A stretch of 64,000 nt of DNA from Zootoca vivipara. Its lineage: Eukaryota. Of the stretch, positions 2,240 to 51,283 are shown piece by piece. A program made the translations under genes and the position numbers. Under the pieces are notes generated by a model. It was not told where the DNA came from and ran no database searches. It saw only the letters and a list, made by a program, of their open reading frames with translations. The DNA is taken from contig NC_083277.1 of assembly GCF_963506605.1 (NCBI RefSeq), positions 82,088,001-82,152,000 of the forward strand, given 5' to 3'. The first letter of the stretch is position 1. Every line of letters starts with the position of its first letter.

Positions 2240-4560
2240 CACAGAGACATTAATCGCCTGCTGTATTTATGGAACCTCCCTACACTGCCATGAAGAAGGT
2301 CAGCTGGCCAGGCATGATATACAACTGAAATCTAGATTGCAGTGTATACTGGGAGAGAACTTTTTACAAAAACCACCACACCCCTTTTCCTGGGCATCTG
2401 TACTTATTGTAAATTTACTTTGGAATTTGAAGTGTTAGAAATATTTTATAAACTTTTTTTGCAATAAATAAGGCATGAGCCAAGGAGCCTGTTCAAGATG
2501 AACTTGCAAGGAACCACTTGAATTACTAGTATGAAGAATCACAAAGTGTACTCTTACTCTTCAAATGTGATAGTCTGAATAGGCCCCAGCAGTGGAGTCA
2601 AGACCTCTGGAAAGTTGGCTGTAAACTTCTGAACATTTACTTTTGTTCTTACTGTGTGTTATTTCACATCTTAACAGACTTTAGTATTTGGTGCAGGTGT
2701 TAGCAGAGCTGTAACCTATTTCTGGAAGCACGTCCACATTCAGCTGTGGTGTTAGATACTGACAGTCCTGTTTGGAGGCAAAGGTTTTCCCTAGAGATGT
2801 TGATAAGGGCAGCGACAGTGAACATGCAATTCTTGATTAATTATGGCAAATCTTTGCTGTTGTGGGAAATGTTTCTTTGATGGCCACGAAGATCATTCTG
2901 TAAAATGCAGGAATCACTGACAATACACAAATGTCTGTGTGCTCGTGATTCTCTAGCTGTAGCCATCCTAAAGGACAGCTATGGCTAAGATAGGGTAGTA
3001 ACTTGTATCCAAAGTCATGTTTCCTTTCTAGTGAAGGAACATATTGCACATTAAATTAGTCCTGACTTGGTTGTGACTAACTTATTCATAACAGCCCGCT
3101 GTTAGATTGGGGTTTTAGAATTTCTAAAGTTAGTTGGTTTACAAGCCCTCTCCAATAAAACAAGTCTTAACTCTTATCTGCAGGTCTTGAGTATTTAACT
3201 GCCAGATGGTTCCACATTTCAATGGATTTCAACCTAGTTTTCCACAGGATTAAAATCTGCTTTTCATATTACCCAGGTATAAAACCTTAACTTGCATTTA
3301 GTTTATTAACAGCGGATCAGGGTTCCCCAGGAAGCTTGATGGGTTAATCAACACAAGTCAAAATGAATGCACAATCTGATATCAAGTTCTTTTAAAACTA
3401 TGACGATGCCATCTATACAAGAGTTAAGTTTTGTATGGCATTAAGATAACCATCTACAGATTAACAAAAGATCTCTCTTTTCCAAAGTTACCCATACCAG
3501 CAAATACAAGCTGAAGTCTTGGCTTCATAATTTCCATGCATGTTGTAATTATACAAGATTTTCCCTTGGCTTTGACAAATTTATATTTTTAAATAGCATT
3601 CTAAACATGGGAAAGATGTATGAGTTAGTATATTACAATGCAATTCTATATTAAATATTTACTAAAAATGTCTGTGAAAACATTTAAAATTTTATTTATA
3701 GAAACAGTTCATAGCACCTTTTTAAGAGGTTCAACTGTACCAGTTTTCTTAAGAAATTAGAGAGGATGTTTAATGGACAACAAGCAATTGCTTTGCAGTA
3801 GTCTTTCTACAATAGTCAAAGCAAAAGAGAAATAAAGTATACTCTACAATTTTCCAGCAAGATTAGAAACTTATTTGGGCAAGGTAAAAGGTACTGCAGC
3901 GAGTCGGTGCAGTGTAGTTAGACAAAAATAAGCATCCTTTTTATTTAAAAGCAGGGTTGGGTGACTTCACTGGAGAAGGTGCACACACCTTAGGAGGTAA
4001 CCATGGCACAAAATGATAGTTTTGACTCAGGAAAATGGTGTTGGCTGTACAAATAAGGGTACATATCTGGATTGATAATGGGTGGAGCCAGTAGTGCCTG
4101 CATAGACAACATCTTACCATACTTTTAGCCTGTGTTCCTATTCCTTCTCCTTCAAGAGCACAACCACTGCCCATTTTACATCCATAACACTGTACAAAGT
4201 GGTAGAGCTACAGGTTGATGGGCAAAATAAAGACAGCAAGGTTGAAAAATGGACAAAATGGCTAGTTGGTACTTACTCATGAAGAATTGAGAAACTACAG
4301 CCACCTTGTTTTTCACTTTGAAATGATTGTCAGGGAAAAATTGTAGTGGTAGAAGTAATGTATTGCTTTTCACCCTTTTGCTTTAGTTGCTTAATATTTA
4401 AGCTTTGCTCCATGTTACCTTTTTGTCTGTTTGCTATGTCACTATGCCTCCTTCATTTGGTAGACTTGAATGAGGAAAAATGATTCAACTTTTAAGGGTC
4501 ACTTGAAATTAATTGTTCAAGAATGTTGTGTACCATCTATTCAATAAAGCCTTGATTTTT
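2240..4560 (+). other. Probable terminal exon/3' UTR of an upstream plus-strand gene (PWWP2A expected by synteny)
   Basis: Pyrimidine tract plus acceptor (tcccccctctccttttcAG, AG at 2238-2239), followed by AT-rich sequence without obvious repeats; AATAAA at 2463-2468 and 4543-4548. In human, PWWP2A lies tail-to-tail with TTC1. The identity is inference only. Confidence 0.35.
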
Positions 4561-5155
4561 TTTCCTGCACTTTTAAAAAAGATAAACAAGCAGTCGGTTT
4601 TATTAATATACTAAAGCTGCAATCCTAGACATACTCACCTGGACATAACTACAGTAGGCCGCCTGTGTAATTACACATAGGATTGCAGGTTGATAAACAG
4701 CTAACACTGCAATCCTATGTGTGATTACAATGCTTCTACTGCTAGCACAAAAGATTGGGACTTCATTTTAGTGTCCCCTGCTTCTGGAATGTTCCTCTAC
4801 AGCCAGTGCTAACTTTTCAGCACTAAATGAAGAATTTATGACTGTTTTTTAAGTTGCCCCCCCCCCCAAGTTTTTAGTATCATGGTGTTTATATCTGCTT
4901 TCTTTATTTCAAACATAGATTTTTAATATGTTTAGTTAACTACCTTGAAAACTCTTGTGAAAGGTGGGTGGAACATTCTGAAATAAAAACAGAACACACA
5001 CTTGTGCTGCAGGATATTTCCAACCGAATAGGCTACAAGGTTTCTTGCTCCCCCTTGCAGCAGGCTCATTCCGTACCAGGTTTGCAAATCTGCTACTTCA
5101 TTAGCAGCTGTAATACTGCCAACAGCTGAACTGTTGTTTATTATATGGAGAATTA

Positions 5156-6492
5156 CCGTGTTTCCCCTTTTTTAATACGTAGTCAGAGAGTAAGCCATGG
5201 CAGCATTTTTTAGCATTAGTGAAACATAAGACACCCCCCGAAAATAAGGCATACCTCCATGCCGTGTAGAACGAGACCGTCGAGCGCCCCAGCCAGCCAG
5301 CGGGACCCAGCCAGCCAGAGGGGCCTGGAACCGGCTGCTGCTGCAGCAGCGAACGCCTGGAGCGCCCGCGCCAGCAGCCTGGCCTCTCTTTTTTTTGCCT
5401 GCCCGAGGCAGCCTGCCGCCCCGCCACCGGAACCGGCGGCTGCAGAGCAGAGCGCTCCGCAGCGCCGGGCAGAGCGCAGCGGCCTGGCCTCTTTATTATT
5501 ATTTATTTGCCGGCCGCCCCGCCATCGGAACCGGCGGCTGCAGAGCGGAGCGCGGCCAGCGGGGAGGGCTGCGCGTTCCCGTGCGGTGATGGCGGTGCGT
5601 GGACGCGCGGCGGTGGTAGCAGCAGCAGCAATGGCTGCTGTGGATCGGCGGCTGCCGAATTTCGATGACTTCACGGGGCAGAGCTGGAGCGCCTGGGTGG
5701 AGAGGGCCGGGCCGACCGCAGCCGAGACAGGTGAGCGCGCCCGCCCTGCCCGCGGGCCCGGAGGTGGCGGCAGGCGGCGGCGGGAAGCAGGGGACCCTCC
5801 GTCGCCGTTTCTGCTGCCGCCGCCGCCGCCATCAAGCTTCCTCCCTCCCTCCCTCGCCTCCCCTCCTCCTCCCTCGCCCCCTCCCTCACCCCGCCCGCCC
5901 CAAACAAAGGAGCCGCCGGGTCCTAGCGCCGCCTCACTTCCCGCCCGATGGATCCTGCCTTCCTTTTCCTGCCGCTTCGATCGGGTTCCCTAGGATCTCT
6001 CGATCCTCCTGATGGGATCCCCTCTCCCCCAGCCTGATTTCACCGGGGGGATGCTGTGATCAAGTCAGGATCTTTGTCCCACGCGTTTTCCAGCTCCTTA
6101 TGTGCTTCTCGTTCCTACTTTGATCCCTTATTACAGGAGCATGGGTTTTTTTTTTACAGGAGCACAGCGGCCTGGCCTCTTTAATTTTTTTTTTTTTGCC
6201 GGCCGCCCCGCCACCGGAACCGGCGGCTGCAGAGCGGAGCGCTCCGCAGCGCCGAGCGCTCGAAACGCCCAGCAGCACCAGGCGGAGCACTGAGCCAGCA
6301 GCCTGCTGCCTTGGTGCTTGGAACCGGCTGCTGCAGCAGCACCGCACAGAGCGCCCAGCAGCACCCCGAGCCAGCTGCCTGGCCCCTCTGAGGAGGCCTT
6401 AAGGTACAAGACATCCCCTGAAAATAAGACACCGTGGGTTTTTTTGAGTAAAAAAAAGAATAAGACGGTGTCTTAAAAAGGGGGAAACACGG
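5156..6492. mobile_element. Non-autonomous Tc1/mariner-superfamily (Tc2/pogo-like termini) DNA transposon carrying a captured gene fragment
   Basis: TA at 5154-5155 and 6493-6494. ~23-bp TIRs: CCGTGTTTCCCCTTTTTTAATAC versus the right-end reverse complement CCGTGTTTCCCCCTTTTTAAGAC. Subterminal AATAAGACACC-type repeats at both ends. No transposase ORF. Confidence 0.85.
5589..5730 (+). pseudogene. ATXN7L2: Captured copy of ATXN7L2 coding exon 1 inside the transposon
   Basis: Translates MAVRGRAAVVAAAAMAAVDRRLPNFDDFTGQSWSAWVERAGPTAAET(G), matching the recalled human ATXN7L2 N-terminus MAVRERAAAAMAALERRVPSLDDFAGQSWSSWVERADLPAADG. Ends at a phase-1 donor (ACAG|gtgagc). No downstream ATXN7L2 exons were recognised in the window. 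Confidence 0.8.
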
Positions 6493-6905
6493 TAAGTATA
6501 GAGCTTCTTTGCTTGCCTTAGGAGCTTGGACATGATTATCTCAAAGTGGTGCTGGGGTATGAACAAGAAAATGATACTGTAAGTACAGCAGATGCAGTGT
6601 CAAGAACTTGTACCAGCTTTTTTATATATTGATATTGCTACAGGTTGTTATATTTTGTCAACTGCCCCTGTTACTGCCCCCTCAAAAAAAACCACCACCA
6701 CCACCACCCAAGCACTAAATGAATAGAATTATCACGTCCTTGATTCATTTACAAAGATAAACACCAACACAATTGCAGCTTTTGATAGCTGCAATTACCC
6801 AGGCTACTTTATACAGTATACTTACATTTATAGGAATTTGAAAAGCATCAATATGTTCCTTTGAATAAGAAAACATCAAAATGCAGACCACAACACCATC
6901 AATGC

Positions 6906-6911
6906 TTTATT
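6906..6911 (-). terminator. Candidate poly(A) signal of TTC1
   Basis: tttatt on plus = AATAAA on minus, ~410 nt downstream of the TTC1 stop. Confidence 0.6.
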
Positions 6912-7322
6912 ACACTTAGCAAAATTGTCCTCTCTCAATAGAAAGGGATCAGCCCTCTCATTTATGCACATATGCTGGAAACTCCACGAACACACAAAAT
7001 GGTTGTACTTTAGTTACAGGTATGGGAACACTGGATTCTTCTATTTAGCAAAGCCAAACACTCCTCCCCCTTCATCACAAGGGAGGATAACGAGTGCCCA
7101 AATAAAGTGCATCTAAGATGGCAGCGGAAGTCAGACCACTTCACTCTATTCACCCACACCTGTAAAAAGTACCTCATAGAAGAGAAATGCATAAGACTAT
7201 GTTCAAATCTTCATACTTAAAGATGTTAGGCCTTAAAAGTTTTAATTCACCCTCTTTCTGCATTCATTGAAACACCACAATTCCAATGCCACACTTTTTA
7301 CCAGGAGTGGGTTGGGCTTATG

Positions 7323-7459
7323 TTATCGGTTGTTGTTATTTGGATTTTGAACAAAGTTGATAGAGTACGAGCCAGTTGAGGAATCCTGTTTCACCTGGAA
7401 GTTCTCTGTTGATAGGCCAAAAGGACGCAGAACCAAGTTGCCCAGATCCTTCAGTTTGC
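7323..7459 (-). CDS. TTC1: Tetratricopeptide repeat protein 1, last coding exon
   Basis: ttgcAG acceptor; encodes (G)[44 protein letters not shown], near-identical to the human TTC1 C-terminus. Confidence 0.95.
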
Positions 7460-8995
7460 CTGCAATACACACACAAAAAGAAATGTACTTCCCAACATGT
7501 ACAAGAAACTACACAAGGTCAGTAATGAAGCAATGTTCCTTGCTGCTTGAACACTGTCCACAATGAGGAGTTTCAAATGAATTGGCTGCAAGCTTTCCAT
7601 TGTTCAAGAGTGTAACACAGGAATGATTCTGTTCTGTACAGCACCTGCCTCATGACACTTGAGCAACAGTAGATGGCCTGTCATTTGGAAAGATGGGCTC
7701 CACGTGCTTGAAACTTTGCTTAGTCCTCTGTCACATGTTAACTACATTAGTGTTAAGCACTGGGCCTATTCAAAGCTTATCTAGTTTGCATGTATGATCA
7801 TTTTGTCTCCAAAAGTAATTAATCTTTGAGAACAGTGCTTTATTTATAGCTAATAAAATAACTTTCAAACTTCCTAAAAAGTTGTAGTAGCCCTAAAAAC
7901 AAAGTGCTGAAACCAAATGGTTTTTAGGCAGAAGTTACAGAGCAAGTAAAAAAAACAAAAACCTAAATACAGCCTGCCTGAAGACCATGAAATATCAACA
8001 TGAAACTAAACACATGGGTAAGAGATAAGAAAGCAAAGTCTGTGCTGGGTAAGCATGCTATGATCCACATAAAAGCTTGTATAAACTTAGAATTAGTTTG
8101 AATGAGCAGCTCTTGTAGATGCAACTTTTGAAGGAACAGCACAAAACATTTGCCTTCTGTCATATTCAAATGCCAGCTTTACTGCTAAAACTGAAAAAGT
8201 AGTTGTATGGCATTTTGGGATTCAATATTATGTTCAGAAATTTGCTGCCTTTCAACTGCTATGCTACAGATACTAAAGCAAATGTTAGCCTCAGCAGTTG
8301 AAATGTAGGACAGACTAATTCATAGTTCTGTCTGCTTTGCCTTTCATTCCAATAAGCATTATCATCTACTACACCCTATTGCCTCTGATCAGAATTTTAG
8401 ATTATAAATCCACATAATTTCAAAGTGAGCATGCAGCATAGTGTGTAAACATTGGTGTTGAGGCACAGCATCTTACTAAAAAGGAGATTGTGACCAGAAC
8501 CACAAGACCAATCAGGTCCAGGTGAGATGCGCAGACTCCTGGGGGCAGGTATTCTTCACTGACTGCCCTTTCTTCTCACCAGCACAAGAGGGAAGGGAGA
8601 TTCTGCACTCAGTATCTTGCTCAGCTACAAGTCTGGCAGAAATGAACCAGTCAACTGTTTCTCTGATTCTGTATGATGGTCACTGTGCAATCCAGAGGGG
8701 TACTCTCTAATTTGAATCTATTGGGAGTTTGCCTCTCAGAATGTGTCTCCCACACACACCATTACCAACAACCTGCATACCTACTGCAACATTCATGAGC
8801 AACTACCACTGCTTCCCCTGTTGGGCTCAATGAGGCCCAATGCAGACACTACCATCGCAAAAATCTGGGGGGGTGGGTGGTAAAATGATGATCCACACAT
8901 AACTACAACACCCACAGATGTCTAGATCAGAATAAATATTTATACCAATGCATGGAAGCTACCACACAAGCAAGCTGGAAACCAATGCCACTTAC

Positions 8996-9050: not shown

Positions 9051-9984
9051 CTAAGAAAAAACAAGAGAATCAATTCTTCAAAGTTGGCTTTGACAACCTG
9101 TTTATTTACCCATGACACATACTATGCATGGTTTGATGCACGACTTAGCACAAAAAACACAGGGGACACACTCATGGTCAGAACTCACTGGAGCACTGCA
9201 ATGCTACTGCAATACTACTTTATACGCGAAGAACTACTTCGTAAGTCATTTTATGGTGCAGAAGTGTTTGGTTGAGTAAATGCTGCCAAACTGGAAACCA
9301 TCCAAAATTTCTTTTTGAGATCACTCTTGAACTTCCCACATGGCACTCCCATTGTAACTGTGAGAGTTGAGGTTATTTTCTATACTGTCCACAGTTCACT
9401 GTGCCTTGCTTCTGTACTGGCTGAAATTACAGCACATGCTAGACACAAGGTTGCCCCTAAAAACATTACTTTGGAGCAAATTTCTGATAGATCAACGTTG
9501 GGTCAATACATGTGAAACCCTTATTACTGCACGGTCTGATTGTTGATGTCTTCAGGGTTACAAAGTAGTGTACTGAAAGTTGCAAAGTAGTGTACTAAAA
9601 ATAAAGTCCAAGAGGTGTCACCTCAGAACCAGACAATTTTCATTGTTTTATTACTCCCTGAAATATTATTATGGTCTTCTAGATTACTCTCTTGAATTAT
9701 CTGTTGAAGCAATGAGGAAAGGGTTTACAGCTTTGATATTTTAAGCTATGATCAAACTATGGTTCTAACTAAAAAAGCTTACTGTGGGTCAGTCCTTCCT
9801 TCTTAGAAATTATTTTGGACTTAAATATGGCAATAAAGTAATCTGATCATACTTTTTCCAAGTTTAAAAGTCTGGTATGCTGTCGTCCTGGTAATGCATG
9901 CCTTTACCTTTAAGATTTAATACTTATGTCCAACAGTCACCAGGAGCCATCCACTCCATTATTTGGGGAGGGAAAGAAGCTTAC

Positions 9985-10133
9985 CATACAAGCTTCTCTT
10001 GCTTGATGGATTGATGGGTCTTTTTCCAACAAGTTTTTGTAGTCTTCTAAAGCTTCATCCAGCTTTTCTGTTTTTTCATATAGTTCTGCTCTCCTGAGCA
10101 ATGCCTTGATATAGTTTGGATTTAATTCCAGGG
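9985..10133 (-). CDS. TTC1: TTC1 coding exon 5 (TPR region)
   Basis: 149 nt, (A)LELNPNYIKALLRRAELYEKTEKLDEALEDYKNLLEKDPSIHQAREACM, AG/GTAAG. Confidence 0.95.
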
Positions 10134-10234
10134 CTATAAAACAAAATTAAAGAAATAGCAGAAAAACTGAGCTGGGAAACTTTTTACTTTGAAGCCTAGG
10201 GCATCTCCAGCATGTTCTAGCTGAGCTAGCCTCA

Positions 10235-12766: not shown

Positions 12767-12870
12767 GTCTAAGAGAACAAAATGCCTTCAGCTGTCAAGT
12801 TTATAATTGAAAGGGAAGATGAAAACAACAATCACATCCATTCTTGCTACTTCACTGTCTTGGGCATTAC

Positions 12871-12983
12871 CTGTTTCATTCTCGCTGCAGCTCTGTTTGA
12901 ATACAAAATGGATCTGTCTGTGTTACAGCAGGCTGGACAAACCTGCAGAGCTCTTGCATAAGCATCTTCAGCTTCTTTATATT
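12871..12983 (-). CDS. TTC1: TTC1 coding exon 3 (TPR region)
   Basis: 113 nt, (E)YKEAEDAYARALQVCPACCNTDRSILYSNRAAARMKQ, AG/GT. Confidence 0.95.
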
Positions 12984-14307
12984 CTGCAATTGAAATGAAA
13001 TGTCGAGATGGAAGACAGCAAGTGCACACACAAGAATTAATGCCTTGAAGGCATGCCTAGCATCACATTCCCTCTCCCCCAATTTAAATTTTCAGAAAAC
13101 TACACTGCTAAAACAAACAAAAAAGCAATGTATCCCAGTCCGAGCAACGGTCATCAAAGTAACTAGAAGCATTACCAGATGTTCAGAATCTCATGCCAAC
13201 CCTTTCGAGGGCTTAGGGGCCAGTCATAGCACATTACAACAGATTAGACATCTTTAACATAGGTGAGGAGCTGCTCATGGTAGATAGGCCTACCCCAATG
13301 CAATTAGGAGGCATCATTAAGGAAGAGGAATTAAGAGTAGGGCAAGGCTCCACAAATACACTTTGTTTTAGTTGCTATGGCAACTAAAATATAATTCTGG
13401 CAACCTGGAATGCAGATACTGGTAGCCAAGGTCTATTCTCCTGACAGTGCACAGAGCCTTGGAGATACTGGAGAGGCAAGAAGACCTTTCTACTTTTGGA
13501 CAATCTCTGTGATTCAGCACAAGTAGTATGGCTCCTTACCCTGCTTCCCAGCACTGAGCCAGGGAAGAGCACAAGGGATTCCTCCCACCGTCAAGTCATT
13601 GGGCCTAGAGCATGGTGTGATGTATTTCTTCAGAAAAAAAACAGGGTGATGGCAAGCCCATCTATTAAGGTCAAACAAAATGTGAAGACTCTTGCTAAAA
13701 GTGCACTCATTTTCTGAGTGCCAACCTTTATGTGCCCCAAAAATGGCACCATCCAAAGACAAGAGGAAGGCCATCATCAGGATCTGGGGAATCCTGAGGT
13801 TTGCAGAAGTACTAAACATATTTAAGAAAATATAGCCCCATGGTGACTATTTTAAGAATTCCTTTTAACTTTCCTCAAACTGTTCTTCTGTGGCATAGTA
13901 TACTTTTACCCAGCCTCTCATATGCCTTATTCCTACCCCATAAAAGAAAAAGAAAATGACAGCAACTCCCTCAGAGCTGTTTTCCCAAGACTGATTGAAG
14001 GGGGAGAAACAATCAATGATAGAACTGCCTCAAAATCCACAATGGATTTAATCCCAAGTAAGCACAAGTATGACTGCAGTTCTGGAATCTTAACTCCCAG
14101 AACCCTTAAAAGAGAATTCCCAAATACAATGGTAAGGTATAAAATGAAGTCCTCTCCAGGGGTATACATTCCAAATATGGCTGGTCATAAGACTACATAA
14201 ACACCTATAAAGGCTGCATCAATCACCTGCACAGATGACAAATTCTGCATAGGATTTGTCTTTAGACTGACCACAATTTTGGTATTACACAGTTGTAATT
14301 CACCCAC

Positions 14308-14368
14308 CTCCTTTCTTAAACTGCTCATTTCCTTCTTCTTTTAATTTTGTGCTCTCATTTCTTCTCTT
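14308..14368 (-). CDS. TTC1: TTC1 coding exon 2
   Basis: 61 nt, KRRNESTKLKEEGNEQFKKG, AG/GT. Confidence 0.93.
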
Positions 14369-15693
14369 CTGCAATGCATAGAAGACCACATAATAAACAT
14401 CTGAAGCAAGTAAGCAAAATAGCTTATTATTTGATAATATCACATCTATTATTTAGTATTTAGTATTAACCATCTATTATTTAGTATTTTCGCTAGTTAT
14501 TTTGTACATACTTTTTAATGTTTTGATTTCTAAAAAGGAGACATGTTTCAAAATCTGAGTGAAGTCTTTTCCCCGCGGGAAAAAAAGCCCAGGAGTTCTT
14601 GAGGCTTGGCTATCCACAAATGCTAACAGTAGGCAAATCATAACCATAGCAAATTTCATTTCCCTAGCTTAAATGGTAGGAGGCTCTTCCTTAGGGCAAG
14701 GAGAACAAATCCTTTACATTTTAAAAATAAATAAATAATTTCTTGATCTCTGAATCCTGTGAAACAGGTCACTTTGCATTTTGCAGATGAGGCACTAAGG
14801 CCAATAGAGACTTCCCCAAACCAAGTCTGGAGTTGTTTGAACACAGTCTTGTGGTTCCAAGAACTACAAAAACTATTCACCCACTTGAGAAAAAAAAAGT
14901 GAAGGAAGAATTGACCTAAGGTACACAGAAATTTTTTATTGTTTACGATTACTTCTGCTATATGTTCTTTGGTTAAAACAAGGAACAGTCAACTTTTGTA
15001 GAAAAATAAGCTTTCAAGAATTACAGCCCTCCAACACTTTTCACTAACTACCACATGCTCTTCTTTTCCCAAATCCCATTTAAGACTTTCTACCCTGGAC
15101 TACCCTGTGACATAGGAGCTCAACCAATGTCTTGTGGAGGCAGGAAGATGTCTAGCCCCCCAACACCCTCTACCTCTTTTACTAATTTCTCAACTTTCTC
15201 AAACCTCTGCCTCTCTATCCATTCCTTTCCTTGCCCCCCCCTTAATCCTCTTTTCACTGGTCTCTAGTTCCTCATCTTTCTGCCCTCTCCCCATTCCATA
15301 AGGTCCCCTCCCCACAATAGTTCTTTCATCCTCACATCCATGACAGCCAGGCTTACTACTTTCCTGGCCCCTGAGCCAATTTCTGCTTCCTAGTTCAGGT
15401 CCTGTGACATCATAAGAGCTCAGCCAGTAGATAGAGGGCTTGAAAGGCAACAGACCCTGCATTTAACTTGAAAAAGTGTATCAACACACACACCCCTCTT
15501 TTTGTACATTCTCTACTTTAATGCACACTACTGTACTTAAAACTGATTGCCCAACACTCTCAGGATTTAGCTTGCAACCACAGTATAGAAAGGAACTGTT
15601 TGTAAGATAAATTTCATTTTATTCTTTGGATTTTTGAAATGCTTTACCAAGGAGGTTTTCCATTTTTTAATGTGGGAAAAAACTTAAAGTTAA

Positions 15694-15729: not shown

Positions 15730-17559
15730 TAATGATTTCCTTTCTCTTTTAGAGAAATCAGGGCCAACAACATCATTTTCTACTACCCAGCCACACACCT
15801 CCAAATTTTAGTAAGTGTTCATTGGATGAAATTAAAATTTGCTATTGTGGTTTTGCTGGTAACTGATGGGAACCAAAAATCTGAATGCAAGGGAAAATAT
15901 TACAAGTTAGGAAACATACAACATTTGAACAGGAATGCATTTCCTTGATAATATTTTTCTGTCATTAACTGTGGCTGAAAGCTAAAAAGATACAATACAT
16001 GGAGCAAGCAGTCCAGCATTAAGGGCGTAAGTACAAGCATCCTTGCTCATCCAATGACTAGCAGAGAGATAACTCTGCAAAGCAAATATTTACACAATTT
16101 TTAATACAATAGAGAGTTCAGCTTTACTAGACACAAGTTGTATGTTACCCAGTGGAGAATCTGATTTTGTTTTTAAATGCAAACACAGACCTTGTTGTTT
16201 ATATACTGCTGAGTCACTGTTGCACATCTTTCGTGATATAAAAGGAGAAATGATTGTGTCTGAACCCTAAAAAGCAGCTTTGCTTGAGGAATGCATTTTA
16301 ATCCCTTTATTAACCTTAGTTATCCGGTCTCTGAATTCCCCAACCCACCCTTCATTCATTGCACAATACCACTGTTGCTTTTGTTGAATGAGAAACATAA
16401 CAAAATAATTACAGGATTAACTTTTATTTTAGATGAATATTCTTGCTACTGAATAATCATCGCTTGCAAATGTGAAAAGCCCAAATCCAGACAGTCATGT
16501 CCCAAACAAGCAAGATAATGTGTCATCTAGCAGTTCTGACATTACAAATAATCTCACCCACCACCAATAAGCACAGCTTTTTAAACTTTTAACAGCTGCC
16601 TTTTCTAAATCCTGAACTGAATCAGACAACTCAGATACGTTAAGTCAAATGACACTTAAAAATCTAGAAGAGTCTAACACAAGAAATTAAAAAAAGCACA
16701 GCCTGCACACAATTGTCCAGGAGGCACACACTGCCCATTTCTGTTTTAGGATGACAGAGAAGAAGTGGAACAGAATAATGAGAAGACAAACAGAAACAAA
16801 ACAAAGGAGTGGTAAGGGGAAAGTCGGTGTCTCTGGCAAATATGGATAACACAGACAAAAAATGAGCAAATAATGACCCTGCTTGCAATCACATGTAGCA
16901 ATATTCCCTAACCTGGTGCTGTGATGGCTAGGGCTGATGGGAGTAGTATTCCAAAATATCTTGAAGTCTGACATATACCGTAGGAAAAGAAGAAATGTCT
17001 CTGTGGATTCCTTTACTGTATCTGAACAAATGACACTTAAGCTGTGGGTGGGGAAAGTCACAGTGCTGGAATTTAATCACAAACCCTCCAAACTTCATCC
17101 ATAAAACGGGGGGGGGGGGAGATGTGTGAACCTGTGCTCTGAAAAGATTGCAATCCAACTAAATCATTGTGCGCATGGAATGACTTCCAAGAGCACAATG
17201 GATTCATTTAAGTACAGGTAGTTCTGCATGCACAATGATTTCATTGGATACTTGCCAATAAGCCCCACTAAGCTCAAAAGGATTTACTTCCCAAAAAGCA
17301 TGAACAGGAATTGGCTGCTGTAGGTGGGAGTAAATTTGACTGAAATCAACAAAAGCTATTTCCAATTAAAAAAAGAGCAGGACTATGTTGAAAAATTTCT
17401 AAAAACATAAATACTAGAAAAGCTAAACTTCAAAACATACTCCTTGGAACTTTGTTGCACTGAAATCAATGGGGCATACTTCCAAAGAAATATCATTAGA
17501 ATCAAAGTGCTAATCAATACAATGTTTAAAGGAACATTTGTAGTTTCATTAAAGCATAC

Positions 17560-17877
17560 CTGTTTTTCTTCCTCAGACATATTTTTCTCTAGTTCTATTA
17601 AGTCCTTTTCATCTAGCTCTATTTCATTTTCTAAAGGATCTGCCTTATTATTATTGTGATTCTCTTCTGCCACTCCTGCTTCAAAAGAGTCATTACAGTC
17701 ATGGAAGAGGTCTTCGTCTTCTCTGGACTCAGAGTGAGGCAGCTGACTCACTCCTTCTTTGGCGATTTTGGGGACATGCACGTTATTACAATCTGGCTGT
17801 GAAGGACTGCTTTGTTCCTCTGAGAGTTTCAAACCCTCAACTAATTTTTCAGGAGAAATTGAATCTTCAGGTTCCAT
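17560..17877 (-). CDS. TTC1: TTC1 first coding exon (acidic N-terminus)
   Basis: MEPEDSISPEKLVEGLKL...DLFHDCNDSFE...ELDEKDLIELEKNMSEEEKQ|gtatgc; matches human TTC1 motifs FHDC and LIELEKNMSDEEKQ. Confidence 0.92.
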
Positions 17878-18899
17878 GTTGAGCCTACAAAGTTGATTTT
17901 CTGCCTTCAACAAACAAACAAAGAAAAATTACATATGGCAACAAATATGAAATCTTTAAACAATGCTGGCAAAATCTTAACACATCTAATCACAGAATCA
18001 GCTATAAACTGATAGTTGGATCTAGAGATACTTTCCCTCCACCATTTTAGCTTCATCTATGAAACATTAAGATATACTTCATCATTCTCAAAGCAGTACT
18101 CTTCCAAAGCAAGCTGAACTATAGAATGGGATTTGGTACAAATTTATACTATTGTATTTTGAACAAGATTATAATGTATTTCAACAGTAATCCAGTGCCT
18201 TTAGTAGCAGCATGATGAGAAACTGTTCCCAGATGCAACTTCACCAGTTATTGAACATACTAAACTATTGACACATGAAACTGCCTTATTATTTAAACTC
18301 AGACCATGACCCTACATAGTCCACCACTGTCTTCTCTGACTCTCCCCAGGGTGAGCCTTGCTACCTCAATTTTATATTTTAACTGGAGACACGAGGGATT
18401 AAACCCTGGACTTCAATGTGCAAATAATGTGCCCTCCCAATCAATTATGGCTCTTACCCCAATATTTCAATTTATTTCTTTTACAGGTTTATGCCATGCC
18501 TTTTAAATAATAATAATAAAGCAACTGAAATTACAAAAAAGTTTAACCCCCCCCATTCCTCTTCTCCCACCCACGAGAACAGGCTTGGCAACTCCTCACA
18601 TTCGATGTGAGAAATCATGCCCGCAGACACCCAAGCCTCAAACGTGACTGGCATCACAGCAGTGGGTAGGGCAACTGAACCCACGACCGCCCCACCAGGA
18701 ACAGCAGCCATGCGCTGCCAGACCAGTGAAGCCATAGAGACATTTTGCAAATTCCTCCTCGCAGAGCTGCTAAAGCCGCACACCAAAACAACAACAACAA
18801 CACGTCCTTATTTAACGAATTCGAGGCGTTCTCCCCTCGGTCCTCTTCACCGTTAGTGCTTACAGGAGCCAGTGATCAAGAATCCTGGGCCCTTGGACA

Positions 18900-19400
18900 A
18901 GCCAGCTCGCTCCCCGTAGCTCCCCCGCCCCTGAAGCAAACCCTAAGGCAGGTAACCCAGGAGCTACACCCCCCCGCCCCCGAAGCCCCACTTCGCCCAC
19001 AACCCCCTTTCCCTCCCTCAGAGGCCCGTACCTATCACGTCTCTACCCGCAACTCCACTACTTCCTGACGCCGCGTCGTTCACGCGCCGCGCTCCCTTCA
19101 CGTCACTTCCTGTTTCCTTTGCAGGGGCGAAGTCAAGACGCTTGGAGGGAGGCTTCGGAGAAAGGAACGTCGGTAACGTCACGACACGCTCTCGTCTCGG
19201 AGGGGTGGACGTCGAGCCTCCCCGGCCAATCAGCGTGGCGGTGGCGTGCAAGGCAGTATTATCGCCGATTGCTTAGAAGTCATTGTTATTGTCACTGCTC
19301 CCTAGCAAGTGGCTTTGTGGCTGCGGTCGAAGAGCCCCGCGGAGATGGCGCATGGCTTTTCTACTGCAGCGCGTAGACTAGGGCAGTTCCCGGTGAAATA
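18900..19400. promoter_or_regulatory. TTC1 CpG-island promoter
   Basis: CpG-dense. Two ETS-type ACTTCCTG motifs (~19059, ~19105), CRE/ATF-like CACGTCAC/ACGTCAC (~19099, ~19176) and a GGCCAATCAG CCAAT box (~19224). Confidence 0.7.
19032..19110 (-). other. TTC1: Probable non-coding exon 1 of TTC1 (5' limit approximate)
   Basis: Minus-strand donor atag|GTACGG at 19031 inside a CpG-rich segment. Confidence 0.55.
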
Positions 19401-20243
19401 AAGGGGGACAGAAGTTGCAACCGTAATTTTTTTACTTTCCTGTTAAGTGATTGAGGAACTCGAATAATTACAGACCAGGCAGAAATTCAGAACAACATCT
19501 TTTATTTTTTTTTTAAAATGTAATCTGGATTGTATGTCCTCGAATATGGGCAAGGTTTCTCTCCGTGGACAAGAACAAAAATAAGAATAAACCTTCTGCA
19601 GTGTGTGCTTTCTTGAAGTATCGTTCCCCGCCCCCCCGCAATTCCAAAAAGCAAAGCCCAAAATAGATTCCACCCAAAATGCTTACTGATATGCCCACTC
19701 ATCAGTTCCCAAACTACTTTAAAAAGACTTAAAGCTGCTTAGAAGTACATGTCAACACACGTGAATAAGCTTTAAAAAAAATCTGAAGTGCAAAAAAATA
19801 AATTTGATAGGACATACAGAAAAGAAGCTTGCTATTTATGGTCCCTTCCAACTCTATGATTCTATGATGAAATTTTTATTATTATTTTTGTACCTAGGAA
19901 GATTTACTACTTTTCCTCTAACAGGATAACTGGTATTCTGATCCTAAGCACTTTTAGAAAATCCTTTTGATTTAAGATCGAAATAAACTTTTCAAATAAG
20001 TGACCCTAAGCATGCTTACTAGGAAGGAAGTTCCATTGAACTACATAGGATATGTTTAAATTCAGGATGAAAACTGGTAGAGGTATGCAAAATAAATAGG
20101 GTGCCTTTAAATAAGCCGCAGCTATATGCTATATATCAGTTGGAGTGTGAACTTTATTAAAAGATTCCTCAGTAAACTTTCAGAGCACAGGAGCTCTCAC
20201 AAAGCAGTGTATAAAAATAAAGAATAAACATAACATTAAAAAC

Positions 20244-20346
20244 AACAGTATAAATAAATTTCAACAATTAAGAAAATTTAGTTTGAAATGAAAAACAGTA
20301 TAAATAAATTTCAACAATTAAGAAAAATTAGTTTGAAATGAAAAAC
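20244..20346. repeat. 50-bp tandem duplication
   Basis: aacagtataaataaatttcaacaattaagaaaa(t/a)ttagtttgaaatgaaa occurs twice. Confidence 0.9.
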
Positions 20347-20957
20347 AAGTAGTTGCTGGCACCATGTCCTGAAAGCAGTGCTAAAGAGAAGCTAGTTTTA
20401 CCTGAGATTCCTAAGGGCCCGTGCCGTCTCTTGATAAGCAAAAAAATTAAATCAAAAAATCTAATGGAACTAATTTCTCATAAGCAATAAGTCCTTTGTT
20501 GCTGCACTTTACACTTTTGAAAAGGTATAATGACAGACAAAGCCATGCAAGCTTGCATATGTGCCAGACAATGCTAGAGACTTGCAGAAGAATGGCCATA
20601 GAGTTCCATTTTCAGCCTCCTGTATTTGAAGATACTCATTGGTGCCCTTTCGTTATGGAACTTGTTCACCTTTGTTAATAGGGGGTGAAAGGACTTGAAA
20701 GGCACCAGTGTCTAAACTTCAGATTCAAAATCATAACACATGAGAGCATCATTGGCAGAGATACAAGTGCCTTTACCTGAATCAAATACGGGCAGTTTTT
20801 GTTATCAGCTGTACTACCAATGCCCTAGGCTCAGGCTAGGACTGTGAAGCAAATTGCAATCCCAATTGCTTAAATCAGATTAAGATTTACAGCCTGAGCA
20901 ATATATTTGCTATGTGCTGCCTAAGACTCCTCTGTCAGGAAATTCAACTAAGGACAT

Positions 20958-21035
20958 CGAGATTCCTGCATTGCAGGGGGTTCAACTAGATGACCCTCAG
21001 GGGTACTTCCAACTCTAAATTCTATGATTCGATGA
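20958..21035 (+). mobile_element. Squamate SINE/CR1-type 3' tail fragment
   Basis: attcctgcattgcagggggtt...actagatgaccct...ttccaactct...attctatgatt; related minus-strand copies at ~21230-21325, ~29295-29425 and ~41380-41490. Confidence 0.7.
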
Positions 21036-23687
21036 CTTTGCAAGTTATACACTTAACAGTGATACTATGTCAGCTCTCATTTAAGGACATTTACTTTACT
21101 ATTTCAGCACAATTGGAGGCTAGCCTCAGCTAACAGCTGAGGAATTTAAGGCAGGGGTGGGCAAATTCAGATGCAGGGCCCAAATGCAGGCATCTTGGCA
21201 TCTCTGGGCCTCAGGATTCTCCACAGACCAGAATTGGAAGGGACCACAAGGGTCATCTAGCCCAACCCCCTGCAATGCAGGAATCTTTTGCCTAACGTGT
21301 GGCTCAAACCCACAACCCTGAGATATGCAGCCCATTATTGAAAACAGTTCCCAGTTCTGATTTAAGGCATGGATAGTGCCAAAGAAAAGAGAGTTTGCAT
21401 TTCTACTATTCTGATCCTAGTTCTCCCCGAAAGGGGGTCCATTTTTCCAGGTGCTTCTCACACATGATAAGAGAATGCAGGGGTGCCAAGTTGAATAAAA
21501 TATTGGGGGGGGGCAAGCATTCCCCACCCCACCTAATCAATCACGAGACACAGCACACACATTATTTGAGTGGCAATGCACATCGACTTTTGGGGGCAGC
21601 CCCCTCCAATATTTTATTCGGGGGCCCAAGGGACTGTCAGCATCTGGGGGTCAAAAGGCCAGCTGGCTAGCCCCCAGCTGGATCGTCTCCTTCCAGCCAG
21701 CACACTGGAAGATCCCCCGACCTCCGGTGCTACATAAATCAGTGACCCAAGTCTGCAGACATGGGCACACTTTACTTAGCAGAGCAAAACTGCGCAACAA
21801 AAGAGGCTTGAAGCTTGTGAAGACATACTAGGAACTACGGATTTATTAATCATAAATCAGAACAAAAAAACATGTTGTCTCTCTCCTTGCCGTCTCTTCC
21901 AAGAGAGAGAAAAGCAAAAGCAAAACAACCCAGCGGAAATTCCACTTATGCCAGCAAACAGTGCTGGAATGAAAACAGACATGAGGCACGTAGTAATCCC
22001 ATGTCTGCAATTAAAGGTGGAATAGAAATTTTCAACAGGGACCTGAGCCCCTAGGAGTTGGCTCCTATGAAGGGATGGAAGGTGAAAGAGAGGCCAGTGC
22101 AACTGACATAGTGAGGATTAGCTAGGACTGCAGTTTAGCTAACAAGCTTGTCTCTTCCCCGACGTGTTTAGCTATTTAAAGCATTGTAAACAAAATAATC
22201 AATGTGACAGGGGAGAGTCTGAATCAGACACTTTCTGCTCTGATATCCCAAATATAGAAAAGCTGTTTTCTCCGGCTATCAAGTAGTATGCAAAACATTA
22301 ACATGTCAAATAGCAAGGAAGATAAATAATGTTTCATCTTTGGAGAAGAAGGGAGAGGGAGAGGAAGAACATTGTCCTACAGTGCAACTTGTCAAAAGGC
22401 ATAGGTGGCACAAACACCCAAACCAGGAGCTTCCCCCTACCTGCGTCTCCTCATTGCTGGATTCCTGTCATTAAAATAGATTGTCATCTTTCTTTCAGGG
22501 AGCTTAATATGTGGGACGCACCTCACCCACACAGAAGTATACTTTGCCCCTTCTGTGCCCCCCTCCAATCTGGTCAAAAGATAAGGAAAGAACTTTCTTC
22601 TAAGCTACCTGGTGGGCACAGAATACTAAGCACAAGTCTCTAGCGGTTTATGGAAAATTTCTAGCTAAACGTGCAAAATCTACATTGCAAAGTCACCATT
22701 GCATGTCCTGCCTGCAAAGTATCACTCAGCAGCTCCCTACATGAATGAGTCTCACATGCGTCTTCACTAATTATGTACTTAAGAGGTATATAACAGGCCC
22801 ATCATGCCATTGGCTGGATTATGGAGCAAATCCTTCATTCCATGCTAATTCTAGTGCTCTGAGAACTCTCTGGCCCCAATAGTGGCCTCTCACCTTCTTG
22901 GCACATTGACACCAACCTAGATTCTGTCACCTGTTAGTACCTTCTAAGCATCATTCAAGCCAGCCTGGGCTTATGAAAGGCAGCAGGAAAAGATTTGGCA
23001 TCCACACACAAAATGGGCAACACAACTGCACACTCATTGCAATATAGATTAATTGTCCAGAAAGGCTCCTTGCATGTACATAAGCCCAATGACCTTGGAT
23101 GCTTGAGCTTAATGTAATAAAGTCAGAAATAACACTAAATAGACTTTACCAAAAAGGAAATGAAAGGGCAAAGGTAATAGTAATACTATAGTAATACCAT
23201 AGAAGCTGAAATGCAAGGGTGTCATATAAACTAGCTGATTTAAGAATCTGAAGAAGTGACAAACAAATCAGGACTGGTTTCAGACCCCTTTTTCCAAACT
23301 TCCTACAAAATAATATTTTCCATCATGATTGAATTAGGGCATGTACCGGTATCCAGAAAGCCCAGGCACTGAGACTGGCTCAAGTTCTCACCAATTCAAC
23401 CTTCTTCAGTAGCACATTATAACCACCTCCCTTTTCTTGCCTCTGAAGGACTGAAAGGATGAAAACAGAACATGGTCCTTGCTTCCTGCTCATTGCTTCT
23501 GCATTTTCTAAAGACATGCAGTCCTTGCTGTTTTTATCTGCACAGTTCAACAATGCAATAAGAAACTACTGCGCTTTATGCAAGGGTTATTTTTAGAAGA
23601 CTGCTTGGTTTGGCTTAAGGCAGGTTTTGCACATGGAGCAGAGGGTGGAAGGGTATGTTTGCATTTTTATGTCTTTTGTTTGAGGGA

Positions 23688-23727
<40 letters not shown>
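23688..23727. repeat. (GTT)n microsatellite
   Basis: Directly visible. Confidence 0.95.
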
Positions 23728-23728
<1 letters not shown>

Positions 23729-24790
23729 TATTATTGTTGATTCCTTTCCCCCAGGAACAAACACTCTTTGCAAATCAGACTCAAAAGCAGTCAGATGCCA
23801 TCACCTCTCTGGCACTGAGGAGAAAGCAGTACAGTGGACTTCCTCTAAAGATGGAGAGAGAGAGAGAGAGAGCAGGGATGGCTTCACTCCATAATAGATT
23901 GCTTGCAAATAGATGAAGCAAATTTAAAGATGGTCACTCCATTAGGAGCCTCAGAATAGAACAGAACCAGGCCTCCAGTGTGGCCAATCAATAGAATAGA
24001 ATTTGATAGTTTAAAAATATCCTTACTATTTATATTACACTAGCAGCCTTGTACGCAGTACTGCTCAGGAATTCTAAGGAAACTCAGAAATCAGTGCAGT
24101 TTTGGAAACAGCAGTTAAAATTACTGCTGTTTTGAAAGGTTCAGTCTGGCATCTTGATTCAAAAATGGCATCTAATTTTATCCAAAAATAGATGAGAACC
24201 TGCTCTTTGACCTCAGGAACTGTCATGCAAATTGTGGTTACAATATCTTAAGAGGGGTCCAAATGTGCACAAACAACTTTGCAAACTATATAGCAGAGTT
24301 TTCCATCTTTATTGTGTTTCACATCAACTCTGTCAGGCAGACCACAGTTGCTAACATTTTATAGAAGGATAAATGAAACAAAGCAAATATCGGTGTGCTT
24401 GCTTTTGGAGATGGGACTTTCACTGCCCATCGCCTTCTGTCTTTTTAAAAAACATTATGTCGTATTTCATTACTCCTAGTTTCTTCTGCCAGACTTCAGC
24501 TTCCACTGCCAGCAGCTTGAAAACATAACTCATCCACATAAAATTCCAAGGATCCGTGAATTTAGTCAAGGATTACGCAGCTCAGAATCACCACCCTAGA
24601 GTTCATAGAAGATAAACACATCCTGAGAATTTGAATACAAGAGCCCTGCTGGACCAGATTAATGCGCCTCATGTAGTCCAACATTGTGTTTTCTACAGAG
24701 GGCCCCAGGTTCAGTCCTTGGCATCTTCAGATAGGACTGAGAGAGACTCTTGCCTGAAACCCCAGAGAGCTGTTGCTGGTCAGTGTAGAC

Positions 24791-24926
24791 CAGGCATCCT
24801 CAAACTGCGGCCCTCCAGATGTTTTGGCCTACAACTCCCATGATCCCTAGCTAAGAGGACCAGTGGTCAGGGATGATGGGAATTGTAGTCCAAAACATCT
24901 GGAGGGCCGAAGTTTGGGGGTGCCTG
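24791..24926. mobile_element. 136-bp hAT MITE nested in an older SINE-like repeat
   Basis: Near-identical to 12631-12766; 8-bp TSD GTGTAGAC (24783-24790 and 24927-24934). Confidence 0.9.
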
Positions 24927-25371
24927 GTGTAGACAATACTGAGCTAGCTGGGTCAAGAGTCTGAATTAATATAAAAGGCAGCTTCCTCTGTTTCCTTATG
25001 ATATGAGAGCAATAGCCCTCTCCTGCTTGTAATCCCCAGCAACTGATATTCAGAAGCATAACTTATGCCAATACTGGGGGTAGCATACAGCCATAATGAC
25101 TTGTAGCCATTGATAGCCCCATCCGCCATGAATTTCTCTAATCCTCTTTTAAATCTGTTGCCATCCTCAAATCTTGTAGAAGTGAACTCCATAGTTAAGC
25201 TACATACTGTGTGAAGAGATACTTTTTTTGTCTGCCCTGAATCTACCGTAGTTCAGCTTATTTTAGTGCAAAATGTGGCAACAAAATTGGATGGGCATTT
25301 TGGGCAAATTGTGTTTTGAAAGCAGGGGGTCACAAAAATTATGGGGCAAGTGTATGATCGTGTGTGGACAA

Positions 25372-25690
25372 TCATCTCGCTTTCAGGCCGAGGGAGCCGG
25401 TGTTTGTCCACAGACAGCTTTCCAGGTCATGTGGCCAGCATGACTAAACCATTTTTGGCACGACGGAACACTGTGATGGAAGCCAGAGCGCACGGAAACA
25501 GTGTTTACCTTCCTGCCACAGCAGTACCTATTTATCTATTCGCACTGGTTTGCTTTTGAAAAGCTAGGTTGGCAGAAGCTAGGACAGAGCAACAGGAGCT
25601 CACCCCATCAGGCCGATTTGAACTGCTGATCTTCCGACCAGCAAGCCCAAGAGGCTCAGTGGTTTAGACCACAGCACCACCCGCATCCCT
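25372..25690 (-). mobile_element. Sauria SINE (partial)
   Basis: Reverse complement resembles 34577-34927 (ggtcatgtggccagcatgac core; tRNA-like head ...ggtttagaccacagcaccacccgcatccc). Confidence 0.8.
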
Positions 25691-25819
25691 GCTGAGTAAC
25701 CACAACTAGGACACACACATTTGTGACCAGTGAAGGTAGCTTCCTAGCCTTAGAGCAGGGCATGATTTCCTTGTAGGCTTGAGCTGTGTATTGTTCCTTT
25801 TAGAAATCAATCACATAGT

Positions 25820-26165
25820 GAAGGGCCTTTTCAGTATTGGCCCCAACTTGGTGGAACGCTCTTTCACAGGAGACCAGGGCCCTGCGGGATTTGTCATCTT
25901 TCCGCAGGGCCTGCAAGACAGAGCTGTTCCGCCTGGCCTTTGGGTTGGACTTACTCTGACCCCTGTGTTTTCCTCCCTCATGGCTTGGATTTATGGACTA
26001 CTTAAAATCAGGCTGCATTTTAAATTTTAATACTGTACTTTAATCTGTATTTTAATCAATTGCTTTTTATGTTTTATTGTAATTGTGTTGGTGTGAGCCG
26101 CCCTGAGCCCGGTTTTGACTGGGGAGGGTGGGGTATAAATAAAAATTTATTATAATTTATTATTA
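25820..26165 (+). mobile_element. L2 LINE 3' end fragment
   Basis: Degenerate L2-type ORF end (...APTWWNALSQETRALRDLSSFRRACKTELFRLAF) followed by a gtgagccgccctgag...ggtataaataaa tail. Confidence 0.7.
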
Positions 26166-26399
26166 TATTTTCAATAAATATACTGCTGATTGAGCAAGTG
26201 GGTTTACTTTGACCCACTTTCATGTATTTCTCACTTTCCAATAACAACTGAATTGATGTATCAAAGCTTAGAAAACAGGATTAGACAAATTTATGGAATG
26301 CAGCTCTCAGTCTCTAAACTAAGCCTCTGTATTCAGGAATAGTATACCGCTCTCCAGCAGAAGCTGGAAGCAAATCACAAGGACCGGTTATCTCTTCCC

Positions 26400-27600
26400 T
26401 GGCCTGTTGGGGAGCGTGTTGGGGAGCAGGCACGAACTGTGGGTCTTCTAAACATACCACGGGGAAAGTCACCATCCGTTTGCCCTGCCCCGTGCCTAGC
26501 CGCTCAGTGTGGCTAGACGGCCGGTTGCTTTCCCCGCACAGCGCCTTGCACCTTCCTCTGATGCGCTGCAAATGCGACCTAAGCCTCTGCAGCAGTGGCC
26601 GGGGGAGCAGGAGAGCCCCTAGCCCGGCTGGCCCAGCTCTCCTCCCGCATCTCCCTCTGGGCGGTCCCGCTCTTTCCCCCCCAGCAGACCCGACGGCTGG
26701 CTGGCTGGCTGGCTGGTGTCCTGCGCACCTTGGGGAGGGGTGGGGGAAGAGAGCGAGCGAGAGGACCCGCGTTATTTGCTGCAGCAGCGGCAAGAGAGGA
26801 GGCAGCGACTCCTCAGCTCCATTCCTCCGGAGCAGCGCGTGGTGGAGACACCGACTGCGCCGCCAGCTCTCCCCAGAGTCCTCCCGATCATCCGGGATCG
26901 GGGCACGCTTGCCTGAAGCCGCCAGACTAACCGATCAGGACAGCCCTTGCCCTGCAACACCTCTGCCGGCTGCAGCTTCGCAGGTAGGCATCTTCCCCAA
27001 GCCCCGGCCGTGCACAGCAATGTTGCTGCGGCTGCAGCCTGTCTGCAGGCGGGATGCTCGGAGGCGCGGGGTGAAAAGCGGGTCAGAGGCAGTGGCCCCG
27101 GCCACGCGTCTTCTTGCAGACAAAACAAGGCGATCGTGCGTGGGCGCCTTGGACATCCTCGGGGCAATAAAGAATCGCTTCTATCTCGGAGTAAGGAACC
27201 TCCCGACGCGCTTCAGTCTTATACTCCCCTTGCAATCCGGGTGAATGGGTGGGTTAAATTGATTTCACTACCGCGCCTTTAATACTGTTTGTGGTTGCAA
27301 CGCGGGGCAGCTGGGGAGAGGGGTAATTGGTGTTTGGGGGTTGTGAGGATAGAAACGGGTCCGTTTTCTTCCGCGGTCATCATTCCGGGGTAGAAGGACG
27401 GGATATTTCCTCTGTTAGCCTCAGGAGACGTGAGGGATTTCAGGGAACAGAAAACGAGAAGCTCTTGTTTTTACTTTTCGTCGTTGCGTACCAGGTGTCT
27501 TGTTTTTAACTCCGCCGAGCTCCGGTTCAACTTGTTTGCATTTTGGGTAGCGGGACCGGGGGGAAGAACGGCGTCGCAGAGTCCACGGTTTTCCTTTGTA
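26400..27600 (+). promoter_or_regulatory. CpG island, probable RTBDN promoter/non-coding first exon
   Basis: CpG-dense block with no recognisable protein. Plus-strand donor ttcgcag|GTAGGC at 26984. The RTBDN coding exon at 33710 begins with an acceptor, so it needs an upstream exon. Confidence 0.55.
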
Positions 27601-51049: not shown

Positions 51050-51283
51050 CAAAGGGAGAAAAGGCGGGGCAGGGGGGTAGGTGGGACCCGCGCGCGCACA
51101 TGTTACCATTGTGAGTCGAATCCGGATTACACCGCCCCCTCCTGCACCTTTGCCCCGCCCCCTCCCAGCACGCTGCACATAAAACCCGGCAGCCGCTGCG
51201 GCTTGTTCTGCTGGTGTCACGCCTCCTCCTCACTTCGAGAAGCGCTCGGCTTAGCTTTGGGACGGCAGTGCGCGGACCAGGAG
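51050..51283 (+). promoter_or_regulatory. PRDX2: PRDX2 core promoter and non-coding exon 1
   Basis: CpG-rich; GC boxes (~51064, ~51132, ~51152); TATA-like CATAAAA at 51178-51184; donor ggag|GTACGG at 51284. Confidence 0.65.

Follow-up and report, generated by a model that had tools for sequence, protein, structure and literature searches.

A window of 64,000 nucleotides from the lizard Zootoca vivipara (NCBI RefSeq assembly GCF_963506605.1, contig NC_083277.1, positions 82,088,001 to 82,152,000 of the forward strand) was analyzed, over its whole length for composition and by local BLAST and, in the ORF-based searches, apart from ORFs overlapping 4377-4414; all positions given here count from its first letter. 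At 5156 to 6492 of the window lies a 1,337-bp block, of the type of a non-autonomous cut-and-paste transposon, that encloses an exon assigned by an original prediction to ATXN7L2. The question raised by this locus is whether a transposon has taken up a piece of a host gene and, if so, from which gene, in what period, and in what manner.

Termini and composition of the element

The block starts with CCGTGTTTCCCC at the left, and its right end is the reverse complement. The original prediction had reported terminal inverted repeats (TIRs) of ~23 bp, TA flanks, and the lack of a transposase, and all three observations held up. Over 23 nt the two TIRs agree at 21 positions, and a repeat search that counted the TA and one extra base extended the pair to 26 nt at 92% identity. 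In the 64 kb, the 14-mer TACCGTGTTTCCCC has just two exact matches, which lie at the two ends of the element in opposite orientations; its chance expectation in 64 kb is 0.26 hits with up to two mismatches allowed, and by rough arithmetic ~0.008 exact inverted 14-mers would be expected within 2.1 kb. Taken with the matches at 10 of the next 12 positions, this makes a chance origin of the TIRs negligible. A TA stands directly outside each TIR (Table 1), as expected from the TA duplication of Tc1/mariner/pogo elements. The mariner superfamily had been proposed as well; the TA flanks and TIRs that suggested it are present, and the assignment draws on these two features alone, a 2-bp duplication being weak evidence. 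Pfam recognized no domain in any ORF of the element, every one of which is too short for a transposase, and none of the ORFs of at least 150 aa in the rest of the window fits a transposase. An Rfam scan of the window from 4500 on found nothing. When the left arm was compared with the 64-kb window, it matched only the right half of the element itself, and a text search of the literature with the TIR string gave chance matches alone, in lists of miRNAs and primers.

The flanks have a GC content of 0.37 to 0.39 and a CpG observed/expected ratio of 0.12 to 0.18, against 0.64 and 0.85, respectively, in the interior of the element, and this sharp step in composition coincides with the positions of the TIRs. 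The CpG island of the element (5161-6420) is the largest in the window.

TABLE 1. Features of the candidate Pack-TIR element and of the neighboring TPR gene, taken to be TTC1
Feature	Position	Strand	Basis
Left TA, half of presumed target-site duplication	5154..5155	.	Direct reading, within 14-mer match
Left TIR, starts CCGTGTTTCCCC	5156..5178	+	21/23 identical to reverse complement of right TIR
Left arm, subterminal ATAAGRC motifs, then GC-rich	5179..5371	+	Sequence, local BLAST
GC-rich core, a complete ~100-bp unit plus the initial 45 nt of another, which the cargo cuts	5372..5553	+	Repeats, local BLAST, alignment
Cargo, ~35 nt of ATXN7L2 5' UTR	5554..5588	+	P0004 match from ~nt 5553; unit match ends at 5553
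Cargo, coding part of ATXN7L2 exon 1, 47 codons and 1 nt	5589..5730	+	Protein comparison
Cargo, 5' part of ATXN7L2 intron 1, donor GTGAGC first	5731..6159	+	P0002/P0004 matches; unit resumes at 6160
Core repeats resume, tail of interrupted unit, then next unit	6160..6260	+	95% identical to 5411-5470
Right arm, another degenerate unit and subterminal ATAAGAC motifs	6261..6469	+	Sequence, repeats, local BLAST
Right TIR	6470..6492	-	Sequence, repeat search, 14-mer
Right TA, half of presumed target-site duplication	6493..6494	.	Direct reading, 14-mer match
TPR gene (TTC1), last coding exon	within 7326-7508, stop codon just below 7326	-	Stop-free stretch, TPR domain
TPR gene (TTC1), internal exons	within 14303-14452, 12850-13056, 9940-10146	-	Stop-free stretches
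TPR gene (TTC1), N-terminal exon	within 17386-17928	-	Stop-free stretch, read from ORFs

The GC-rich core and its interrupted unit

Between the AT-richer arms, the core of the element is built of degenerate direct repeats of ~100 bp (families D1, D2, and D4). Each unit proceeds from a T-rich stretch to a conserved GC-rich stretch containing GGAACCGGCGGCTGCAG and then to a terminal CCTGGCCTCT; over the element, GGAACCGGC is found five times and CCTGGCCYCT four times. The units were not called by Tandem Repeats Finder and were seen by repeat search and alignment. One of them is split, its initial 45 nt stopping at 5553 and its tail restarting at 6160. When 5509-5553 and 6160-6197 are joined, the alignment yields a unit in register with its neighbor at 5411-5508, minus 16 nt; the interruption is judged here against the internal repeats of the element itself. 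The core units on the two sides of the break are 92 to 95% alike and in register, as expected of two pieces of the same TIR element in the sense of Tan et al. (PMC8277862). Since the split unit rejoins in register, the 606 bp between its halves (5554-6159) were placed inside pre-existing element sequence. By this alignment, the 606-bp insert is foreign to the original design of the element and took the place of 16 nt of one unit, and the element minus its cargo would come to ~750 bp. The original prediction had described a GC- and CpG-rich cargo; the cargo proper covers less than this, namely 5554-6159, and the remaining GC-rich interior is the ~100-bp repeat core of the element.

The same junctions bear on composite mobilization, in which two copies of the element would have inserted to the left and right of the first exon of the parental ATXN7L2 gene and their outer ends would have moved the block between them. 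Cut-and-paste elements in general are known to undergo composite (macro)transposition; nothing specific to this locus points to it. We regard it as very improbable here, given that no internal terminal repeats lie by the cargo, the 14-mer being found only twice even at two mismatches, and that what lies on each side of the cargo is half of a single in-register unit and not an element end.

Two further features of the core may be recorded. Each unit (5411-5470, 5509-5553, and 6198-6257, and in degenerate form 5320-5390 and 6313-6392) has CCGCCCCGCC, which is GC-box-like, paired with CCGGAA, which we take to be an ETS-like core. Judged by its sequence, the body of the element looks like a CpG-island promoter even when free of cargo. 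At the 3' end of the cargo, ACAGGAGCA occurs twice (6133-6141 and 6155-6163) with a spacing of 22 nt; the second copy is preceded by a run of T10 and continues into the resumed unit as GAGCACAGCGG. The pair of ACAGGAGCA copies may have been left by microhomology or by slippage at the point where copying switched back.

Identity of the cargo

The 606 bp of the cargo fall within the 100 to 5,000 bp of non-TE sequence that Tan et al. set for such elements, and they comprise ~35 nt of 5' untranslated region (UTR), the stretch of exon 1 between its ATG and its donor, and 429 intronic nt. The ORF that begins with the ATG at 5589 encodes 48 residues up to the exon end at 5730, and GTGAGC follows from 5731, just as had been read originally. 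The recognition of the peptide as the N terminus of ATXN7L2 was likewise borne out. Among 1.8 billion representative proteins, the best full-length match was the Elgaria ATXN7L2 (XP_062996689), with 88% identity, residues 1-48 aligned to 1-48, and an E value of 5e-16; bird ATXN7L2 proteins ranked after it. The closest N terminus among the 120 ATXN7L2 orthologues listed was that of Zootoca vivipara itself (46 of 48 residues), and the Podarcis and Lacerta agilis proteins agreed at 45 of 48. In the protein search the peptide was closer to ataxin-7-like protein 2 than to its paralogues, and the best solved structure, human ataxin-7, was matched with an E value of 0.067 only. The exon ends where exon 1 of the orthologues ends (...AETG), after which exon 2 of lacertids continues with SDVEEN....

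The similarity extends beyond the exon on both sides. A homologue search with the 244-aa and 134-aa read-through ORFs of the cargo region recovered loci of other species and a bird fragment (P0004, P0002, P0001, and P0008), from a collection in which the ORFs of this genome seem not to be included. P0004 (183 aa) and P0002 (116 aa) are ORFs that read through the ATXN7L2 locus in contigs of other lizards, and they match the cargo in two frames, from ~nt 5553 upstream of the ATG to ~nt 5950 past the donor. The boundaries of the cargo were drawn from this protein-level evidence and from the repeat register, and 5951-6159, the last 200 nt, were assigned to intron 1 by position alone. Because the 5' UTR and the intron match the loci of other lizards, the copy was made from DNA and is not a retrocopy. 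As far as sequence comparison can tell, the cargo thus reproduces the start of ATXN7L2 at the level of DNA. The original prediction had reached capture at the DNA level from the retained exon-intron boundary; the boundary proved orthologous, and the match to exon 1 and intron 1 on which that view depended was found, as was the match of the upstream sequence to ORFs of other lizards.

No more of the gene follows. A tblastn search of the 64 kb with the full Zootoca ATXN7L2 protein found residues 22-48, within exon 1, and no other exon, so the remaining exons and the SCA7 domain of a functional gene are missing within 64 kb, and the copy is a fragment. Two acceptor-like ACAG/GAGCA sites at the 3' end of the cargo were considered as the start of exon 2 and rejected, the sequence downstream of them not coding for the SDVEEN... 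of lacertids. It is hardly credible that the exon is the genuine first exon of a local gene and that the inverted repeats are coincidental, even with a start codon, a good splice donor, and a CpG island in place: by tblastn, the 58 kb downstream are without a further ATXN7L2 exon, TTC1 occupies the opposite strand there, two invariant residues are replaced in the peptide, and the exact 14-nt ends with their TA flanks coincide with the boundary in composition.

Upstream of the true ATXN7L2 start, residues 30-50 of P0004 encode ...VPGNYISHGA.... Back-translated, this peptide presumably gives a promoter motif of the ACTACA-TCCCA type (ZNF143/THAP11-like), located ~75-90 nt ahead of the ATG. With its start just 35 nt from the ATG, the cargo has probably left this portion of the parental promoter behind.

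State and age of the captured copy

The copy differs from the Zootoca ATXN7L2 by two replacements, L24F and A29T, both of which lie in LDDFAGQSW. L24 and A29 are invariant in every orthologue compared, from lizards, snakes, tuatara, turtle, alligator, and birds. Replacements at invariant residues are expected under relaxed constraint, which indicates that the fragment is not being kept as part of an ATXN7L2 coding sequence; by this measure, the exon copy is decaying.

A third position speaks to the donor. T43 (in GPTAAETG) is present in the copy and in both Zootoca isoforms, and across the sequences compared (8 from lacertids of 5 species and ~25 from other sauropsids) it is confined to Zootoca. 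The residue at this position is a proline in Lacerta agilis, in three Podarcis species, and in nearly all other squamates. The shared T43 argues that the donor was a gene of the Zootoca lineage and that capture followed the split from Lacerta and Podarcis. This is the most economical reading of the protein sequences; T43 could also have arisen in the copy by convergent change.

Genomic setting

Within the window, Pfam TPR repeats were found in minus-strand ORFs only. They belong to a gene that we take to be TTC1, going by its likeness to the human protein, and the name given to it in the original prediction agrees. The gene runs from right to left from a CpG-island promoter at ~18761-19420, and an AATAAA on its strand lies at 6906-6911. 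Its N-terminal exon had no match in a protein atlas, and two ad hoc TPR regular expressions found no match in the window; the exons were seen by Pfam and by reading of the ORFs (Table 1). About 830 nt separate the TTC1 stop codon from the element, which is downstream of it, on the other strand, and not intronic. It is probably also beyond the TTC1 poly(A) signal. The captured exon is directed at the 3' end of TTC1 and is antisense to that gene. With the largest CpG island of the window aimed at the 3' end of TTC1, the element might give rise to transcripts that are antisense or chimeric.

The other CpG islands of the window were considered as elements of the same kind and rejected, none of them, including those at 26314-27280 and 49341-51560, being framed by inverted repeats. 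The island at 26314-27280 (a large one of 940 bp, with a GC content of 0.63) contains long ORFs of 159 and 254 aa that overlap one another on the two strands, and it lies just past an interval (19400-26400) marked as a TTC1/RTBDN "breakpoint" in the initial reading of the window. Three smaller CpG islands are clustered at 49341-51560.

Support from sequencing runs

In an index of sequencing runs, 15 runs contain 50% or more of the words sampled from 3500-8500. Runs or contig sets of two studies reach 0.92 of these words, and the element makes up 27% of that stretch. Such coverage in two studies argues against an artifact private to this assembly and is no proof of the junctions. GC-rich repeats are difficult to assemble, and ATXN7L2 CpG-island reads might in principle have been misjoined into the GC-rich repeat of the transposon. 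The contig sets of the two studies speak against such a chimera, as do the two residues at which the copy, unlike the real exon, departs from the annotated Zootoca gene, and the in-register substitution by the cargo of a small piece of one unit; we consider a chimera highly unlikely.

Four small contig sets of one organism, RNA by an automatic guess, hold 0.45 to 0.54 of the 3500-8500 words, which far exceeds what the last exon of TTC1 alone would give. These sets could reflect a long 3' UTR or read-through transcription across the element, or they could actually be DNA. Runs of two related organisms hold 0.22 to 0.24 of the same words and could show an empty site.

Proposed origin of the element

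The ends of one TIR element thus stand around a gene fragment that has kept its intron, and the Pack-TIR proposed by the original prediction remains the reading that we prefer. On the sequence features described above, the block is very likely a Pack-TIR, that is, a TA-inserting, non-autonomous TIR transposon with a fragment of a host gene. In this account, a break or a stalled fork would have occurred within one core unit, GC-rich repeats being a plausible place for either. Repair would then have drawn 606 bp from ATXN7L2, whose 5' end, as a GC-rich CpG-island template, is a plausible microhomology partner, and would have returned to the element with the loss of 16 nt of the unit. With both ends and the TA flanks intact, a transposase acting in trans could move the element together with its cargo. 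The repair mechanism, the mobility after capture, and the superfamily are what we infer.

We lean slightly toward the view that the capture preceded the arrival of the element at its present site and that more than one copy exists in the genome. Alternatively, the capture may have taken place where the element now lies: an old resident element would have broken in its core, the gap would have been filled from ATXN7L2, and the element would never have moved with its cargo. Single-copy Pack-TIRs are the commonest kind, at 98.6% of animal cases, and Tan et al. ascribe them to transposition-independent gap filling with internal breakpoints (PMC8277862). The good preservation of the TIRs and of the TA flanks weighs against capture in place, and the failure of the protein searches to find a second copy carries no weight, those searches having been blind to the DNA of this genome. 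We consider capture in place rather unlikely; it is in any event a variant of the main explanation and concerns the same kind of object.

A broader proposal is that, in the genome of this lacertid, young non-autonomous DNA transposons with GC-rich cores, whether of repeats or of hairpins, have recurrently captured the 5' CpG-island ends of host genes and later transposed, the ATXN7L2-bearing family then having at least 2 copies. We offer this tentatively, as a possibility against which we still lean somewhat. If such recurrent capture is true, "portable CpG islands with a start codon and a splice donor" would be scattered near other genes.

Comparison with known systems

Capture of gene fragments by TIR transposons is already known in animals and is not yet described in lizards. 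The original prediction held that such capture is little documented in vertebrates, and this needs to be divided. A literature search found no report of gene capture by a TIR transposon in a squamate, but animal cases have been catalogued. Tan et al. (2021, Nat Commun 12:4280, PMC8277862) listed 370 animal Pack-TIRs, 115 of them TcMariner and 4 of them multicopy. Their criteria were two pieces of the same TIR element, including the terminal bases, with 100 to 5,000 bp of non-TE sequence inside; a unique parent in the same genome, with at least 90% identity and a length ratio of 80 to 120%; retention of an intron from a multi-exon parent; and, as a control for segmental duplication, a parent that is not flanked by TEs. 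Single-copy cases were attributed to gap filling and multicopy cases to replication-fork switching followed by transposition, and the breakpoints were skewed toward the interior of the elements. The supplementary table of the same study has no cases in anoCar2 (lizard) and thaSir1 (snake), genomes in which very few TIR elements are annotated.

Like those animal Pack-TIRs (PMC8277862), the Zootoca element has the ends of one TIR element around a gene copy that keeps an intron, with an internal breakpoint, and like the multicopy frog hAT-N8_XT with CAPSL of that study, it carries a piece of 5' UTR. It differs from them in that the breakpoint lies in a GC-rich core of ~100-bp repeats and in that the parent is known at the protein level only. 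The Zootoca case is cleanly resolved, with the insert lying within one repeat unit and with the 5' UTR, the start codon, the donor, and the intron kept. We know of no comparable census for Zootoca vivipara.

A relative may exist in the same lineage. Paulat et al. (2023, PMC10162687) described nMariner1_Lbo, a 184-bp non-autonomous Tc-Mariner element found in Zootoca vivipara, Lacerta agilis, and vespertilionid bats. The two are alike in being short and non-autonomous and in sharing the lizard lineage, and 184 bp is near the ~200 bp of the two AT-richer arms taken together; they differ in that no cargo is reported for nMariner1_Lbo. Likened by its description only, nMariner1_Lbo may be the chassis of the family to which the Zootoca element belongs.

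Other vertebrate DNA transposons, the Helitrons of bats and Xenopus, also pick up and spread promoter and exon fragments of their hosts. They differ from the present element in being rolling-circle transposons without TIRs or a TA duplication and in capturing by read-through and not by gap repair.

Gene capture by cut-and-paste transposons has been studied thoroughly in plants; for animals there is one catalogue. The Pack-MULEs of rice and maize are, like the Zootoca element, non-autonomous DNA transposons with gene fragments, exon-intron structure included. They differ in belonging to the Mutator superfamily, with 9- to 11-bp duplications and long terminal repeats, and in occurring in thousands of copies that are often multicopy and expressed. 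Pack-MULEs reportedly favor the GC-rich 5' ends of genes, and the cargo found here is such an end. Should the Zootoca element prove to exist in several copies and to belong to a genome-wide capture process with a 5' bias, the acquisition and spread of promoter-proximal exons could be studied in lacertids as a vertebrate system. Recurrent capture of this kind, if true, would be to vertebrates what the 5'-biased Pack-MULEs are to grasses.
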